Source: Ministeria vibrans ATCC 50519
Lineage: Eukaryota; Protista; Filasterea
Direction of reading: 5' to 3'
DNA length: 64,000 bases
Assembly (NCBI GenBank): GCA_943704425.1
Contig: CALSCP010002431.1
Location: 1 to 64,000 of the forward strand
The notes beneath the pieces are model-generated. The model saw only the letters and a list, made by a program, of their open reading frames with translations. It made no database searches and was not told the DNA's origin. Both the position numbers and the translations under genes were made by a program. Of this stretch, positions 20,444 to 63,639 are shown in pieces. The stretch's first letter is position 1. Each line of letters starts with the position of its first letter.

Positions 20444-27882
<7,439 letters not shown>

Positions 27883-43693: not shown

Positions 43694-46014
43694 TTCATGC
43701 GTGGTATACCTTGAGGTTGGTGGACTCGAGAAGGGGCTTCATGCCAGAGAGAAAGAGTTCCTTCTTGTCGTCAAGGACCTTGTCGCACGCATTGACAAGA
43801 TGCTTGACAATGTCGAGTGAGCCAATGCGGCTCTTTTCGTTGGCCGCAGCACCTTCAATGCGCTGGATGAGGAACGAGACGACTCGGTCACTGAAGACAC
43901 GACTCATAATCTCAAAGCAACGCAACAGTTCGTTGTGGTTCTTGAGCGACGATGGATTGGAATAGTCAACGCGCGTAAACACAAACGGCTGAAGGCTCGT
44001 CAAGACCTATCAATAAGAAGAGAAAGAAGAACAACCCAAAGTGATGAGTACAATGCCACATTCTCCTTTTCACTTTGTTTCTTTCTTCCTCCTTTTCTCT
44101 CCATCACTTTGTTTCTTTTCTTTCTCTCTCTATATATATCATATATATATATCACTTTGTTTCTTTCCCCCTCCTTTCTCTCTATCTCTTACGGGTTCGA
44201 GAAGAGGAAAGAGCGCCTGTGAGTCATCTGCAACTGCAGCCTCCAAAATCATCGAGACGCCCTGTGTGATAGGAAAGACATCCTCCTTGTGCTTGTTGTA
44301 CAGGCCCATGATAGTCGGTAGAAGGGTTGGCAGCTGCCCTTCAAACTGGTGGCGGTCCAACACATGGCAGATGGGCCCCAGCGCAGCCACAATTGCAAGA
44401 CGCGTCTGGATTTCATTGCTCTTGAGCCACACACTCACCATCACCTTCAAACAAACAATAACGTTAATTTTCCATATTGTGGCCGTTAATCCATCAATAT
44501 CATGCATCCATACACTCACACTCACACACTCACATACCTCGTAGATGGTAAAGGCCTGTCCGCTAAAGTCCTTGACGGTGATACTTTTGTTCTCCACCTG
44601 GTCAATGTTTGCGACGTAGTTGAGAATCGCCTCACAGAAGTGGCCCATTGCTGTGTGAGAGAAAAGCCAAGAAGCATTGAATGAGAACACGAGAGCGCGA
44701 GGCAGAGAGAGACAAAGACAGAGACAACAACAGAAACAAAAACAGAGATAGATACAAAGTAAAGAGTGAGATAGAAAGAGACGGATGCAAATGATAGTGA
44801 GAGAGAAAGAGACAGATACAAAGTGATAGAAACAAACAATGTGATAGAGAAAGAGAAGAGAAAAAAGAAGCAAAGTGATAGAGAGAGAGATGTCTTTGTC
44901 TTCGTTGTACCGGTGGCAAAAACCTTCTTCATGGCGGGCTGTTGGATCATGGCCAGAACGGGCAACAGACGACTGAACACATCTTGCAGCTGAGGCACAA
45001 TCAAGAACTCTATTGACAACACATCGAGTACCATACACCCAGTTTAGTCTTTCAAACGCCCCTCTTTCTCCTGTCTCTCTCTCTCTCTCTCTCTCTCTCG
45101 CACTTACGATGACTGGAGGCAAACTCGCCCAAGGTCTGCAGGACAAAGTAGCTGGGAATCGAGCCTGGTTCGCACTTTTCAAGGAGCGCCTGGATCACTT
45201 TGGTGGAGAAGCGCTGGCCCAAAGCAATGAGGAAGCTGCACGCCGTGTCCTGCCACTTTTCGACCCTTTCGCGCGACGCAGTAAGCTCACGAACGCCCAG
45301 TTTGATGAGACCGTCGACAAGCGATTCGTCGAGATGCTTCTGCTGCGCAATTGCAACCTCACACATGGCCTCGAGAAGAGTCACGCGGTGAGGCGTGGGC
45401 ACCTGCGTCAGCCATATCCACAAACGCGTTCGTGTGAGATTGTCACAAGTTCGAAGTCACAAAAAAAAAAAAAAAAAAAAAAAAAAAANNNNNNNNNNCG
45501 TCGTCATCATGGATCGCCTGCCGAGTGACGGGACCCGCCCAGAGGTCTTGAGGCGACTGGTGAAAGTATAATCATTCTCTCTCTCTCTCTCTCTGTCTCT
45601 CTGTCGAGCGGAAAGAGCGCCAGCGCCAACGCAGACGAAGCATACCTTCTTGTGGACAGAGAGGAAGTGTTGGCAGGAGCTGAGCAGCAGGGCTGGCTTT
45701 CGCATTCCGATGTCCTGTGTGGCGCAAAGAGCAAATGTGAGGGATGGGGAGAGAGTCACCGAAGAAGAAAAAAAAAAAAAAAATCCCCTAAGTTTGATGG
45801 TTGGCGTGAGGCTGTACCGCAAGAGACTCTTTCACAGCACGTCGCGTTGCACCGTCTTTGTCGCCGGCAGTCTCCGCCAGGGCCATGACGAGGGCTACGG
45901 AGAAAGAGAGGGCAAATCAGAAGGATCATTCTGTTGACAAAACGTCCTTTTCTCACCGTCAATTTGACCGCCCGTCTTGATAACGGACGGGGCAGCAGCC
46001 TGTTCCTTTCCCAT
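38805..46014 (-). CDS. MROH1: Maestro heat-like repeat protein MROH1/HEATR7A, multi-exon
   Basis: KNHNELLRCF, LWPYL, KATLMLSYGY, VPRCSDP...RQDAIDC, LLHLND, W..IRANA; long HEAT-repeat character. Confidence 0.88.
43490..43695. repeat. (ATT)n intronic microsatellite
   Basis: Degenerate tta run in an MROH1 intron. Confidence 0.9.
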
Positions 46015-46274
46015 ACTGGAATGCACGAAGTCAAAAGAAATTGTTTATTGTAAATATTGATTATTGATTATTCAATAATATTATTATGGTTATTCTGGAC
46101 CTAAAGAAAGTGTATATAAATCAAATCAATCGATTATCGCGCGACATCAACTCCCTACGAACCATTCAAGCTTTGCTGCTTGCTTGCTGGTTATTTTAAG
46201 TTTTAACAAGCTTGTCAAGACATTTGATCATTTTCATGCACAATATGCCATATTAATACTTTTGTTTATTATTA

Positions 46275-47655
46275 TCAGTTTTCATCTTCAAACAGCACCT
46301 GTACATCTAGCGCATTCTCTGGCCCTACAAGAAGGCCTGCTACCGACTCGCGCACAGCCGCGCACACGAGGCTTCTAAGGTGTGCTGTGTCGCGGAACAG
46401 CTCAACGACAATGCGCGTGCGGTTCTCTTCAGTGCGCCACACTCCCTCGACCTTTCCACGGTACAGCACAGTCGCTTGGATAAATCCTCCTGTCGTCCAC
46501 ACTCGCTTCGATTCCCGCACAAACTCCTCGCCAAACCAGAACGGCTTGTCCGCATACCCCATAAGAAGTGGATCGAATTTGCCCAACAGCCGCACAGGAA
46601 GAGACGCGAGTGCCTCTGCTGCGCACTCGTCACTGCCATACTGTCTCAGCGTATCATCAAGGCCACCGTGGTCCCCGCGTGCCAGACATACCAAAGGATC
46701 TTCTTCTTTTCTCCGTTTCCTACGTCGTTCACGCCCACCACCTTCTTCTTCTTCTTCTTCTTCTTCTTCTTCTCCTTCTTCTTGATCACTCTGCAGCCTC
46801 CTGCGCACTCTCACAAGTGTGCCGCTCTCCAGTCCCTCTGTGATGCACGCGCGCGCAACAAGTACACCAAACCCAGACCAGTAGGCAAAGTCGGCGGCAT
46901 CGGCGGGCCCATGGCCCACCAAATAGCGTTCCAGCAGCACACGCGCACTCTCGTCAAAATCGCCGGGTCTTGCATCAGCATCTTCGGCCCACTGAAAACA
47001 ATTAGCGCTGCCCATCTTGGCGGCACACAGCCACAAGCGTCCCTCGGCAACAAGGGTGTGGACGGCCCCGTCGTAACGCAGTACTTCTTCGTGGTAGACT
47101 CCACCGCGTCGAAACTTGGCGTTGCGGAATTTGAGGGACGCGAGCGCCGTGGTCGAGTGAGGTCCTGGCGCTCGCTCACAATGCCGCTCGATGTCGTCCA
47201 TGGTGCTACGGTACCCGTTGTACGGCACGTCTCGCTTTTGAAGCATTTCGCGAGTGGACCTCTGTAAAGCAGACAGAATAATGCAGACAGAATAATATTA
47301 ATAAGGTTTCGTAAACAATCCACCAATTTTATCGTACGCTTTTTCGAAGAAGCGCCGCGCTCATGAGAGGCCAGACGCCACGCTCAAAAATATGCATCGT
47401 GTGTCGAATGCCCCATGAGCGCACCGCAGACGGGGCGTGCCCTCGCACGTAGTGGATGGGTCCGCCTGCGTCGGCGACCGTCTGCGCATCGACGCGAACG
47501 CGACTCGTTACACTGTACGCCCCCGCGAATTCCTGCTGTGACTGGACCGCGACAAGCGTTCGCAGCACATCGCATACATGCGTATGAGGTGACTCGTAGA
47601 GCCCGCTAGCGTACAGCCGGTGCAGGCGCAATTGCGATTCAGAAATAGTCAGCAT
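46275..47655 (-). CDS. AlkZ-like (HTH_42 / winged-helix) DNA glycosylase, 2 exons
   Basis: VAVQSQ, WGIRHTMH, RYLVGHGPADAADFAYWSG, VRLLGKFDPLLMGY, GKVEGVWR; 76-nt GT-AG intron 47262-47337 joins in frame (RKS|RSTREMLQ). Confidence 0.85.
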
Positions 47656-47894
47656 CGACTTAATAAAAGAGGATGCACACCCCTGGCCAGCAGCAGAGGC
47701 TCTCTTGGCAACAGGCCGACAGTAGTAGATGAGGGAGGGGCTCACAAGAGTGTGAGAAAAAATGGAATGATTTTTTGATATAATATTTTGGTAAATTTGG
47801 CTCTGGTCTGTTTTCACCGGAACGCACAAATCACATCACAATTCACAGCCTAGTTCACACGTTTTGTACTTGACTCTTTGAGATATATATCATC

Positions 47895-50562
47895 ATGTCT
47901 ACTTGTCATACGTATCGCGGCGACGGCGCCCAAGTGTTTGTGGCGCACGCATCGAGTGGCCGACTCGTTGCGTTTGACTCTGCACGAGGCACCGTTCAAC
48001 TCGATCATGTGGACGACAGACACACCGAAGCCGGCGGTATAACCGTGCTGGCCGTGTCGCCTGCGTCACAGGGACCCGTGCGAAAGCGAAAGCGTCGTCG
48101 TAGCGGCGGCGATGGCGACGAAAACGAGGACGACAATGACGAGCAAGGCGGCGAAGCTCGCGTCGCCGTTGGCCTTGCTTCGGGCGCCCTTCTTGTCCTT
48201 TCAGCCAACGATGGCCGTCTCCTGACCACAGTGCCGGCGGGAACGCTGCATTCGGGCGCGATTCGCGCGTGTGTGTGGCAAAATGCCGAAACGCTTTACA
48301 CGGGCGCCGACGATGGCTATGTTTGCCAGGTAAATGCCGTCGCAGGGCGACAGACTGCACGCTGGCTGGCCGACCGACAAGGCGTTGCCGCGTTACACGT
48401 GACACGCAACGAGCGCGTCCTCGTTGTGGCCGGGCGCGCCATCACACTGTGGGACACGAAAACACACGAGAAGCGCGGAAACCTGACGGGACACGATCAG
48501 CAGGTGTTGCGCGTGCTCGAGCCGCGACCCACCGCCACAGCCGGCAAGGGCAGTAAGACACCTAGCAAGGGTGCCGCAGCCGGAGACAGCGATGCTCCTC
48601 TCGTGCTGGTGAGTGGCGCCCGCAACGACCGTTTTCTCTCGGTTTGGCAGTGTGACGCCGACGGCTCCACCAACTCGCCAGCGGCCGTGTGCACTCTCTC
48701 GTGTGGCAACGCCACGCCCGAAGTCCTTGATGCGGTTGTCAACACCGATTCGGGTACTCTCACGGTGGTCATTGCGTCGGCGACTGGCGCTGCTCAAGTG
48801 TTTGACGTAAGTTTTAGCTCTCACATAATAATTTATTATTATTAATAATTATTTATTTTTATTATTGTAAAAATAATATTCATGCCCTCTTGTGTAGGTG
48901 ACTAAAAAGCAAATGGAACGACCGACCGGCAAGCGAGCGAAGAAGAACAAGGAGAGCGGGGAAGAGACGGGACCGGTGAAGGCGCGCACAACGATTGTGG
49001 TGCGGGAGGAGAGCAAAGGTACACAGACAGCAAAGAAGAGCAAGGGGAAGAAGAAGGGAGGACAAAACGGGAACAACATTGCGATTGTGTCGGTACACGT
49101 GGACGGAACGGGCGAGCGGGTGATGCTAGTCCGAGGTTCGTGGCTGCGACCGGGATTTGAGTGGTGGGCACTCGACACGACTGAGCCTATGTGCGTGCTC
49201 GAGCGTGCACAGACTACCAATGTGCTCGGGGACAGCGGAGTCGGTTCAAGCGACGCTGCTGCGCTCTCAGAGCTGCACCAGCTGCCGGCAGGGCGAGGCA
49301 CCGATGACGGGCAGGTGCTGGGACGCACGTCACTGCCACTGGCGGGCGCAGCACCCACAGCCGGCGCAGGTGCAGATGAGCCCACCATGGCCGACCAGCT
49401 GCGTCTGCTCTCCGTCACGGACGGCACAGGCGGACGCGCCAAGCAGACTAACGCAGTCCCAAAGGTACGCATGAGGATCTATAGAGAAGAGACATACGTG
49501 TGATGCTAAATGATTCTCGCTAGGCGCAATCACTGGCTGCGATGCTGGTGCAAGCACTGCACTCGGAAGATGCACATCTGCTCGAGGACTGTCTCAACAC
49601 GACCAACAGTGCGACTGTGACTGCCACAGTGCGCCGTCTTCCCTCCGCGTACGTCGTGCCGCTCTTGGCGCGCATTGTGGAGCGCTTCCAGGCCAAGCCC
49701 AGTCGTGGGGCTATGCTGGGCGTGTGGATCCGCACACTTCTGGTCGTCCACACTGCCTACATCATGTCGGTACGTATTTATGCCTGTGCCTGCGTTTCGT
49801 CTTCTCTCGCTCGCTTTCTCGCTTTCTTTGTTTGTGATGCTATTGCTTACTGTCATTCTCTCTATCACTTTGTTTCTTTCTCTCCTCTCTCTCTCTCTTT
49901 CAAACACTCACTCTCTCTTGCTCTTTTGCGCATGTGTATGTTTAGAGTGGCGATACTCTTGCGAGTCTGTCGACTCTGTATCAGTTGTTGGACGAGCGAT
50001 TGAGCGTTTTTAAGAAGTTGATGAAACTGTCGGGACGCATGGACTTGATTTTGTCACAGGTAAGCAGGAGAAAGAAGAGTCGTTCGTATCCGTATTGGTC
50101 TCTAATGCATAAGTATCACTTTATTTCTCTCTCTCTCTCTCTATCACTTTGGTTCTTTCTCCCTCTCTCTATCACTTTGGTTCTTTCTCCTCTCTCTATC
50201 ACTTTGGTTCTTTCTCCTCTCTCTATCACTTTGTTTCTTTCTCCTCTCTCTCTCCCCTCTGGTGTTAGATTGCGTCGCGCGCACACGACGAAGATGAGGA
50301 GGACGATGGAGATCTGAGAAACGCCGCCACTGTGTATGAGGAGGACGATACGGATGAGGAGGATGACGATGAGGAGGACGACGAGGACGAGGATGATGAT
50401 AGTGATGAGGAGATGTTGACCGAGTCAAAGGGTGACGATGAGGAGGGCGAGAGTGATGAGGATGATGAGAGTGACGAGGAAGCGGGAGAGGAGGACGAAG
50501 AGGACGAGGAGGAGGAGGAGGATGAAGACGACGACGACGACGAGTCTGACGACGACGAATGA
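47895..50562 (+). CDS. WDR43: WDR43/UTP5 SSU processome factor
   Basis: WD40 repeats, NLTGH, NDRFLSVW, Utp12-type domain LVQALHSED..LLE.CL...WIRTLL..H..Y, KLMKLSGRMDL, acidic tail. Confidence 0.88.
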
Positions 50563-62001: not shown

Positions 62002-63639
62002 TCAAAAGCTGAGATCGCTTTTCTTGTCCGCGTCAGGCGCAGTGAGATCGCTTTTCTTTTCAGCGTCAAATGGGGTGAGACCGTGTTTGGGCATGTACTC
62101 ACGAGTGCGTCGCTGAAAGAGCGGCTGGGATTCAGCACGGTACTTGCGGTGAATTTCGATGCGACGGAGACGCAGGAGACCGGTGCCAGTGTAGCGTGTG
62201 CCAAGGGCCAAGTGGATGGCCGACATTGCAATCTTGTAATCATCGCGGGAGGGCATTTCGATGGAGAGGACGTTGCACAATCGCTCGACAGTGGTGTGCG
62301 TGAGAATCATAGAAGATGGCTAGATGAAAGGGAAAGTAGCGAAGAGTCAGTCTGCTGAAGAAAGCCTGTTGATCATAGTGTTGTTGTTGTGTGCATACGA
62401 AAATGTTGACCATGGAGAGAATGTGGTCGGTGGTGGCCTGACCGTCAAGCGCGCACATCAGCGTACTCTCCAGGACGTCGGAGGGGAAGGCTAGGCCCTC
62501 GCGGCTGAAAAGCGAGAGAACGCCAATGACAAAGGCAGGCCGGGACGACGTAAAAAGCTCGCTGAAGAGCGGTGCGGCTGTGTCAACGCGCGTGATCTGC
62601 TGCCCAAAGCGACGCCCCAGCTCCATTTCTTCCTCGTCCGTCCACTTGCTTGCCTTCTCACGCATTTCCTCCTTGTAGTTGGCCAAGAGCATGCTGAAAA
62701 GAGGGTTCATGCGGAGATCCAGCGTGCCGTTCTCGGGCAGCAGATGAACGTGCAGTTGCAAGAGCACCTCCAGCCCATGCAGCATTTTGGACGACTGGGC
62801 CTATAAAACAGTGTGAGTATGAGTGCCCCTGTTTGGCTTATTGACTGTATGTGGGACCTCTTGCACAAGGCTCATCAGACGGCCAACAAGAATGGGCGAG
62901 TAGAGGGGCAGTGGCACTTCAGAGTGCTCAAGAAAGTGAATAAAGTGCTCGTCGAACTGGAATGGAGGGGCAGTCAAGTACACCTGAGGACACAAGAAAA
63001 AAACACACAGTCAGTGGCCTTTCCCCTCGCTACTTTGCTGTTTCCTTCTTGTCTCTCTCTAACACAATGTTCTTTTTCCCTCCTCCTCCTCCCTCTTTAT
63101 CACTTTGTTGTTTCTTTTTATCACTCGGTTCTTTCTCCCTCCTCCTCCTCCCTCTCTATCACTTTTGTTGTTTCCTTCTTGTCCCTCTCTAACACAATGT
63201 TTCTCTCTCTCTCTCTGTATCACTTTGTACTTTCTCCTCTCTCTCTCCCTCTCTGTGTCACTTTGTTCTTCCCCCCCCTTTGACAACACCGAGGAGTACA
63301 CGCGCCTCAATGCGTTCATCANNNNNNNNNNNNNNNNNNNNNNNNNNNNNNNNNNNNNNNNNNNNNNNNNNNNNNNNNNNNNNNNNNNNNNNNNNNNNNN
63401 NNNNNNNNNNNNNNNNNNNNNNNNNNNNNNNNNNNNNNNNNNNNNNNNNNNNNNNNNNNNNNNNNNNNNNNNNNNNNNNNNNNNNNNNNNNNNNNNNNNN
63501 NNNNNNNNNNNNNNNNNNNNNNNNNNNNNNNNNNNNNNNNNNNNNNNNNNNNNNNNNNNNNNNNNNNNNNNNNNNNNNNNNNNNNNNNNNNNNNNNNNNN
63601 NNNNNNNNNNNNNNNNNNNNNNNNNNNNNNNNNNNNNNN

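Follow-up and report, generated by a model that had tools for sequence, protein, structure and literature searches.

A spliced and polyadenylated AlkZ-like gene of Ministeria vibrans, a putative DNA glycosylase gene in an old eukaryotic clade of a mainly bacterial family

The stretch of 64,000 nucleotides analysed here (positions 1 to 64,000 of contig CALSCP010002431.1 of Ministeria vibrans ATCC 50519, hereafter the window) carries on its minus strand, at 46275-47655, a two-exon gene encoding a protein of the DNA glycosylase AlkZ-like family (HTH_42, PF06224), a family described as overwhelmingly bacterial (PMC9040887, PMC13705206). The gene is expressed, spliced and host-like in composition, and its nearest relatives are eukaryotic. 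The best overall explanation, which we regard as probable, is that this nuclear gene, present once and sharing its promoter with a neighbour, encodes a monofunctional glycosylase of the AlkZ-like (AZL, Q-x-Q) subtype, which would excise lesions by the mechanism that we infer from the bacterial enzymes, and that it stands, fully naturalised, in a deep eukaryotic clade. The initial annotation of this DNA had proposed a bacterial-type crosslink glycosylase, domesticated by a bacterivorous protist through horizontal gene transfer and possibly directed against genotoxins of its prey. The gene is organised as follows.

47338-47655, minus strand: coding exon 1, 106 codons with the ATG start at 47655; predicted winged-helix domain 1 with the Q-x-Q and W-x-x-R-H-T motifs
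47262-47337, minus strand: spliceosomal intron of 76 nt, GT..AG (GTACGA...TTTACAG), 32% GC
46275-47261, minus strand: coding exon 2, 328 codons and the stop TGA (46277-46275); predicted winged-helix domains 2 and 3 and C-terminal beta-barrel
47536-47544, minus strand: putative catalytic motif Q38-S39-Q40 (codons CAG TCA CAG), as read from the sequence
46695-46793, minus strand: acidic/basic insert, a glutamate run followed by RERRRKRRK, resembling a nuclear localisation signal (NLS), encoded by a GAA/GAG-type simple repeat
46231-46274, minus strand: 3' untranslated region with AATAAA (46270-46265) and poly(A) addition sites at 46239 and 46231
47656-47760, minus strand: 5' untranslated region of about 90-105 nt, without an upstream ATG

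The unspliced frame meets a stop two codons into the intron, so the intron must be spliced; the initial annotation was right about its length and its spliceosomal nature, and loose only in calling it in-frame, since 76 is not a multiple of 3. A six-frame PF06224 search of the 29.7-Mb assembly gave the gene as a single copy (66.3 bits).

As the exons were searched and folded separately, the results on family and fold hold exon by exon and not for the joined protein. PF06224 matched exon 2 over profile positions 127-320 with 72.4 bits (E 6.9e-20; the cut-off is 25.9) and exon 1 over positions 2-67 with 21.1 bits (E 2.7e-4), the two matches being colinear. By these profile matches, the check to which the initial annotation had pointed, the product is assigned to the HTH_42/PF06224 superfamily as an AlkZ-like protein, and the AlkZ/HTH_42 motifs that had been recognised by eye, VQSQ among them, are borne out on both exons. 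Members of the family carry a catalytic (H/Q)-phi-(D/Q) motif (PMC9040887), which AlkZ-like enzymes have as Q-phi-Q and YcaQ-like (YQL) enzymes as Q-phi-D (PMC9040887, PMC13303869). VQSQ (Q38-S39-Q40) falls in the family column that reads VQAQ or VQGQ in all relatives and QAQ in AlkZ of Streptomyces sahachiroi (5uuj), an alignment that puts the presumed catalytic motif in the first winged-helix domain. Both exons also retain the other near-invariant residues of the family, namely W81, R84 and T86 in exon 1 and Y113, P119, D124, F229, D230, K239, W255 and W275 in exon 2. A profile built from the window exons and 16 relatives matched AlkZ 5uuj from end to end (E 3e-59), whereas its match to the YcaQ-type AlkX 9zd6 was partial (E 3e-8). 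With glutamine as the third motif residue and a profile far nearer to AlkZ than to AlkX/YcaQ, the protein belongs to the AZL subtype; the marks of YQL proteins, Q-phi-D and high conservation with YcaQ/AlkX, were not found, the motif being Q-S-Q and the similarity to 9zd6 both weak and incomplete.

The predicted structures point the same way. The AlphaFold model of exon 2 (predicted local distance difference test, pLDDT, 82; predicted template modelling score, pTM, 0.78) retrieved AlkZ 5uuj as its top Foldseek match (E 1.4e-10) and AlkX/YcaQ 9zd6 as its second (E 4e-5), and exon 1 was modelled as a winged helix with pLDDT 92. By sequence, phmmer of exon 1 against the PDB gave no match. The two models, taken apart, predict the three winged helices and C-terminal beta-barrel of the family.

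For transcription, reads of four public runs were mapped on 45600-50000 (4,401 nt), these being the RNA runs X7 and X9 of one 2025 study, the RNA run X18 of a 2011 study and the DNA run X2. The RNA contigs of X7, X9 and X18 carry a joint from 47261 to 47338 that skips exactly 47262-47337, with CT..AC ends on the plus strand, while in X2 this joint is absent and the contigs have no joints of any kind. RNA-seq across these very positions had been named as a check on the intron, which three runs of two studies now confirm. Introns of the neighbouring genes (48807-48897, 49463-49521 and 45714-45816) are likewise skipped in the RNA contigs, and the intergenic DNA at 46041-46187 has zero depth in X7 and X9, the two deep runs. 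At the 3' side the RNA contigs end in 22 nt of loose poly-T at 46239 (X7) and 46231 (X9), which we read as poly(A) tails added 26-34 nt past the AATAAA at 46270-46265. At the 5' side they reach 47744 (X9) and 47760 (X7), and the RNA contigs of the upstream WD40/Utp12 gene begin head-to-head with them at 47856/47861. A bidirectional promoter of about 100 bp is probably common to the two genes. The outermost RNA contig ends of the AlkZ-like and WD40/Utp12 (WDR43-like) genes (47744-47861) were seen to lie only ~100 bp apart. Contigs of the RNA and DNA runs alike break at the simple repeat 46730-46789, as the mapping method skips repeats. Besides, X2, which bears the same organism label and comes from another sample, shows a single difference, 46953 G>A, at the third codon position of Asp103 of exon 2 (GAC to GAT), which by our reading of the frame is synonymous.

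The surroundings of the gene are equally those of a eukaryotic nucleus. The downstream neighbour is a multi-exon Maestro-HEAT gene (PF21047 at E 5e-48; PF23210) and the divergent upstream neighbour a WD40 and Utp12 gene (PF04003 at E 3.6e-17), both with spliced introns, in agreement with the MROH1 and WDR43 assignments made initially. GC content at third codon positions is 0.65 and 0.57 in the two exons, inside the range of the neighbours (0.48-0.75), and relative synonymous codon usage correlates with that of the neighbours at 0.54, compared with 0.60 when one half of the neighbour set is set against the other. The X2 DNA contigs run from the AlkZ-like gene into both spliced neighbours, interrupted at the repeat stretches 45755-45795 and 46730-46789. 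The AlkZ-like gene is thus a genuine, host-like nuclear gene. The flanks, a Maestro-HEAT gene and a ribosome biogenesis gene, form no genotoxin cluster; location in a biosynthetic cluster is typical of AZL genes and not universal among them. The window holds assembly gaps of 1,166 N in total (45489-45498, 22551-23367, 63322-63639 and three shorter runs), of which 45489-45498 lies inside the Maestro-HEAT gene region beside a poly-A/T tract. Runs whose labels name seawater metagenomes, algae metagenomes or several other organisms also contain the segment 45900-48100, partly or nearly whole, which suggests a marine flagellate occurring in cultures of algae.

We then looked at the relatives of the protein. 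When 1.84 billion representatives were searched exhaustively with HMMER, 1,131 matches came back, the best at 79 bits and none at E 1e-30, so that no close relative was found among them. Word-index protein searches were nearly empty (2 and 6 matches) because the protein is too divergent, and the relatives were recovered by the exhaustive HMMER search together with a 19-row eukaryotic profile. These relatives resolve into two eukaryotic clades. The first, clade A, comprises the window protein and four proteins designated P0004, P0006, P0169 and P0171. Exon 2, P0004 and P0006 group with a Shimodaira-Hasegawa-like approximate likelihood ratio test (SH-aLRT) value of 99 in a quick tree, and with bootstrap 100 and SH-aLRT 98 under LG+C20 with posterior mean site frequencies (PMSF), a site-heterogeneous model; the grouping survives removal of either partner, and P0169 and P0171 join it in a later tree. 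Members share derived residues that are rare elsewhere, such as R-H-T for R-G-T, F-W/Y-F after the DK motif, and P13, Y63, H68, N87 and F243 of exon 2. In BLASTP, exon 1 matched residues 34-125 of P0004 (E 8e-13) and exon 2 its residues 138-434 (E 9e-25), keeping the junction colinear, and exon 2 matched P0171 at E 4e-18; identity between the window protein and its clade-A relatives is about 22-34%. A scan of JGI metagenomes with the clade-A alignment gave no confirmed relative, and the ESM Atlas, uninformative for small eukaryotic clusters, returned bacterial clusters only.

The genomic context of the clade-A relatives is eukaryotic as well. P0004 lies on a 263-kb contig of 30% GC with RRN3, RhoGAP, ubiquitin/Rad60-SLD and protein-kinase genes, and P0171 on a 209-kb contig (L024; 57% GC in the stretch read) among genes for eIF2B-epsilon (W2 domain), a THOC3-like WD40 protein and a leishmanolysin-like protein (Peptidase_M8) that has SH3 domains. 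The 62%-GC contig of P0006 (L005) is syntenic with L024 and is taken as eukaryotic for this reason. Two clade-A orthologues, 88% identical, show purifying selection, with 0.073 nonsynonymous (dN) and 0.50 synonymous (dS) substitutions per site and dN/dS of 0.15. The order WD40, ADH, NAD-binding, CREG-like, Ephrin_rec_like, AlkZ-like is identical upstream on L024 and on the contig of P0006 (L005:5001-6305). At L024:10001-13800 the AlkZ-like gene is flanked by an AlkB-like 2-oxoglutarate-Fe(II) oxygenase gene (convergent, 9 bp away) and an MgsA/WRNIP1-like AAA ATPase gene, the trio making a small DNA-damage gene cluster on a compact eukaryotic contig. Another match, P0005, is a long repeat protein of 2,147 aa that met exon-2 residues 61-100 in 23 stretches for a total of 74 bits; chance similarity inflated by the repeats is the probable reason.

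The second clade, clade B (bootstrap 100 / SH-aLRT 99), is separate from clade A and comprises the chytrids Spizellomyces punctatus (SPPG_08174), S. 'palustris', Powellomyces hirtus, Geranomyces variabilis, Thoreauomyces and Phlyctochytrium arcticum (the accession QEAR00000000 is that of a chytrid genome study), the plasmodiophorid Spongospora subterranea and the red alga Pyropia vietnamensis. Databases give them no name beyond 'winged helix DNA-binding domain-containing' or hypothetical protein. Both motif glutamines are kept in all members of clades A and B. At the base of clade B branches P0166 (L025:8001-9242), which is bacterial by its operon-like context of Na/H antiporter, sulfatase and RodZ-like HTH_25/DUF2914 genes and is a candidate relative of the donor of clade B. 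The nearby bacterial set, in a scan with the single protein P0116, is dominated by metagenome-assembled genomes of Planctomycetota and Verrucomicrobiota, and Listeria costaricensis and Candidatus Blackallbacteria were also recovered. Approximately unbiased (AU) tests were run under LG+G4. Holding all eukaryotic members together cost 0.39 log-likelihood units and was not rejected (p-AU 0.495), clades A and B together with P0166 outscored the free search by 9.2 log-likelihood units, and joining clade A to a Planctomycetota-type group was likewise not rejected (p 0.56). In the site-heterogeneous tree clades A and B were not recovered as sisters.

On these trees the AlkZ-like gene is placed as a member of an old, patchy eukaryotic lineage within a mainly bacterial family. 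A recent transfer into the protist of the window is excluded, and any transfer must be ancient, because the nearest relatives are eukaryotic themselves and share only about 22-34% identity with the window protein. The predominance of bacteria in the family makes it plausible that the gene is ultimately of bacterial origin, and it may go back to one or several ancient transfers or to early-eukaryote ancestry with massive loss. Most likely clade A descends from an ancient transfer from a bacterium to a eukaryote, after which the gene would have been fully naturalised, gaining an intron, a poly(A) signal, the codon usage of the host and the NLS-like insert. Of the domestication proposed initially, naturalisation and a plausible bacterial origin stand, and what falls is its restriction to this bacterivore. 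The initial annotation had also set a broad vertical eukaryotic distribution against itself, and this was found by half, in that several lineages carry the gene but in a patchy manner.

Signs of adaptation to a eukaryotic cell include the insert and the intron. The insert of ~33 residues is specific to the lineage, nearly all relatives having a gap there; it sits at the tip of a beta-hairpin, between strands 149-152 and 190-193 of the exon-2 model, where disorder is predicted (pLDDT 55-59), and K or R occupies 7 of the 8 residues at exon-2 positions 177-184. Of 29 eukaryotic members, 8 have a cluster with at least 6 K/R in 8 residues, mostly N- or C-terminal, as against 3 of 126 others, counts that lack phylogenetic independence. 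The internal basic cluster, being NLS-like, would probably serve nuclear import. An organellar presequence was rejected, as the AlkZ-like domain begins at residue ~5. None of the four other clade-A genes has the intron, nor does the chytrid gene of P0026 (P0004, P0006, P0171 and P0026 are all single open reading frames in DNA), and its presence here is most simply explained as a gain in the lineage of the window.

The function proposed for the protein is modelled on the solved bacterial enzymes. The three winged helices and beta-barrel would form a concave, basic surface for binding DNA, where Q38 and Q40, lying on a strand of winged-helix domain 1, may position the water that hydrolyses the N-glycosidic bond. 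The lesion would be a bulky adduct of the N7-alkylguanine type or an interstrand crosslink, excised with the base not flipped, and the abasic product would pass to base-excision repair. In the 2,860-contig assembly a six-frame search detected FANCD2 (E 1e-147; G000:C245:59799-63971), and the same kind of search gave, provisionally, no Fpg/Nei N-terminal (PF01149), H2TH (PF06831) or AAG-type glycosylase (PF02245) domain. Such a repertoire would leave room for the AlkZ-like enzyme as the glycosylase route to crosslinks and alkylpurines. It is conceivable, though we hold it only tentatively, that eukaryotes have long had, in AlkZ-like proteins adapted to the nucleus, a route for unhooking crosslinks and bulky alkyl adducts, which scattered protists, chytrids and algae have kept and which here would replace the NEIL3/Nei and AAG-type glycosylases that the genome appears to lack, beside an intact Fanconi (FANCD2) pathway.

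Several observations weigh against the explanation given at the outset. Exon 1 alone stays under the Pfam cut-off (21.1 against 25.9 bits), and the best geometric match of its model, the N-terminus of AlkZ 5uuj (TM score 0.55, root-mean-square deviation 3.6 Å), is not significant at E 0.25. The middle residue of the motif is Ser, atypical against the usual hydrophobic residue or Ala, and clade A has long branches, of 0.9-1.6 changes per site. That the mRNA continues through the repeat 46730-46789 is assumed from the open frame. As three deep groupings are all unrejected, the tree does not fix the direction or number of transfers or the bacterial donor. Substrate, catalysis and localisation as given above are all putative, and the substrate cannot be guessed, since AlkZ-like enzymes are substrate-specific and gene-cluster context is lacking here.

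Among the alternatives, the one that survives best is that the gene is ancestral, present in an early eukaryote and inherited vertically, lost in most lineages and in need of no later transfer into eukaryotes. It is supported by the unrejected single clade of all eukaryote-labelled members, by the very deep divergence within clade A, whose genomes are of 30%, 50% and 57-62% GC, and by the spread of members over fungi, Rhizaria, red algae and the lineage of the window. We consider it unlikely, however, as the lineages that carry the gene are only a handful among eukaryotes and thousands among bacteria, as it would require very many independent losses, and as P0166, bacterial by context, stands at the base of clade B and the site-heterogeneous tree does not join clades A and B as sisters.

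A second alternative is that glycosylase activity has been lost and the protein now acts as a winged-helix DNA-binding or chromatin protein. The long branch, the large disordered acidic/basic insert in the hairpin, the atypical Ser in the motif and the R-H-T in place of the near-universal R-G-T all favour such a change. It appears improbable to us nonetheless, since both glutamines and the other near-invariant positions are kept in all members of clades A and B and since clade A is under purifying selection.

The idea that the gene came recently, and in this lineage only, from prey bacteria into a bacterivore and was retained against prey genotoxins could draw on the taxonomic make-up of the family (PMC9040887, PMC13705206) and on the purely bacterial Atlas neighbours. 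We find it very improbable, as no representative comes closer than 79 bits, the nearest relatives are eukaryotic, and the composition is fully ameliorated. The carriers moreover include chytrids, a plasmodiophorid and a red alga, none of which eats bacteria; as several carriers are not phagotrophs, the prey-genotoxin rationale is not needed, and the claim of a transfer peculiar to a bacterivorous protist fails on this second clade and on the unrejected single eukaryotic origin. Finally, bacterial contamination or an assembly chimera, for which nothing speaks beyond the taxonomic bias of the family, is refuted by the read mapping, with an intron spliced in the RNA of two studies, a transcript with AATAAA and poly(A) and second-sample DNA linking the gene to both spliced neighbours save for two short repeat stretches, and by the host-like base and codon composition, so that it has next to no probability, as the initial annotation had argued.

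In comparison with known systems, AlkZ of S. sahachiroi shares with the window protein the Pfam family, the Q-x-Q in winged-helix domain 1 and, by prediction, the three winged helices and beta-barrel, and 5uuj is the best PDB match by sequence profile and, for exon 2, by structure. The window protein differs from it in being only ~20% identical, in having Ser in the middle of the motif rather than Ala or a hydrophobic residue, R-H-T rather than R-G-T and the ~33-residue hairpin insert, and in being encoded by a nuclear gene of a eukaryote, which has an intron and a poly(A) transcript, lies outside a biosynthetic cluster and so is without a cognate toxin. With the YQL proteins YcaQ of E. coli and AlkX (9zd6) it shares the superfamily and the fold (Foldseek E 4e-5); their motif is Q-x-D and not Q-x-Q, and the profile favours AlkZ by E 3e-59 against 3e-8. 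YQL genes and the window gene alike stand outside toxin clusters, which would fit a general-purpose repair role. The clade-B proteins are eukaryote-encoded and have Q-x-Q like the window protein, many of them with K/R-rich tails. NEIL3, the known eukaryotic interstrand-crosslink glycosylase, would match it in niche, unhooking crosslinks alongside the Fanconi route, but has an unrelated fold (Fpg/Nei).

The family has been studied as a toxin self-resistance or pathogen fitness factor; its literature counts 12 archaeal members and discusses eukaryotes only by way of NEIL3, and one macroalgal survey includes PF06224 among its Pfam labels without comment. No study of a eukaryotic member was among the papers found. 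The protein is not a new kind of enzyme, and eukaryotic members were already visible, unannotated, in public databases. What is added is an extension of a 'bacterial' crosslink-repair glycosylase family to expressed eukaryotic genes and the definition of a eukaryotic clade, with direct transcript evidence for one member in a robust all-eukaryote clade that stands beside a second. The gene offers a clean example of the complete naturalisation of a mainly bacterial family, in its intron, poly(A) signal, codon usage and NLS-like additions, and makes testable whether some eukaryotes may unhook crosslinks by a bacterial-type glycosylase that does not flip the base, either replacing the NEIL3 and Fanconi routes or working beside them.

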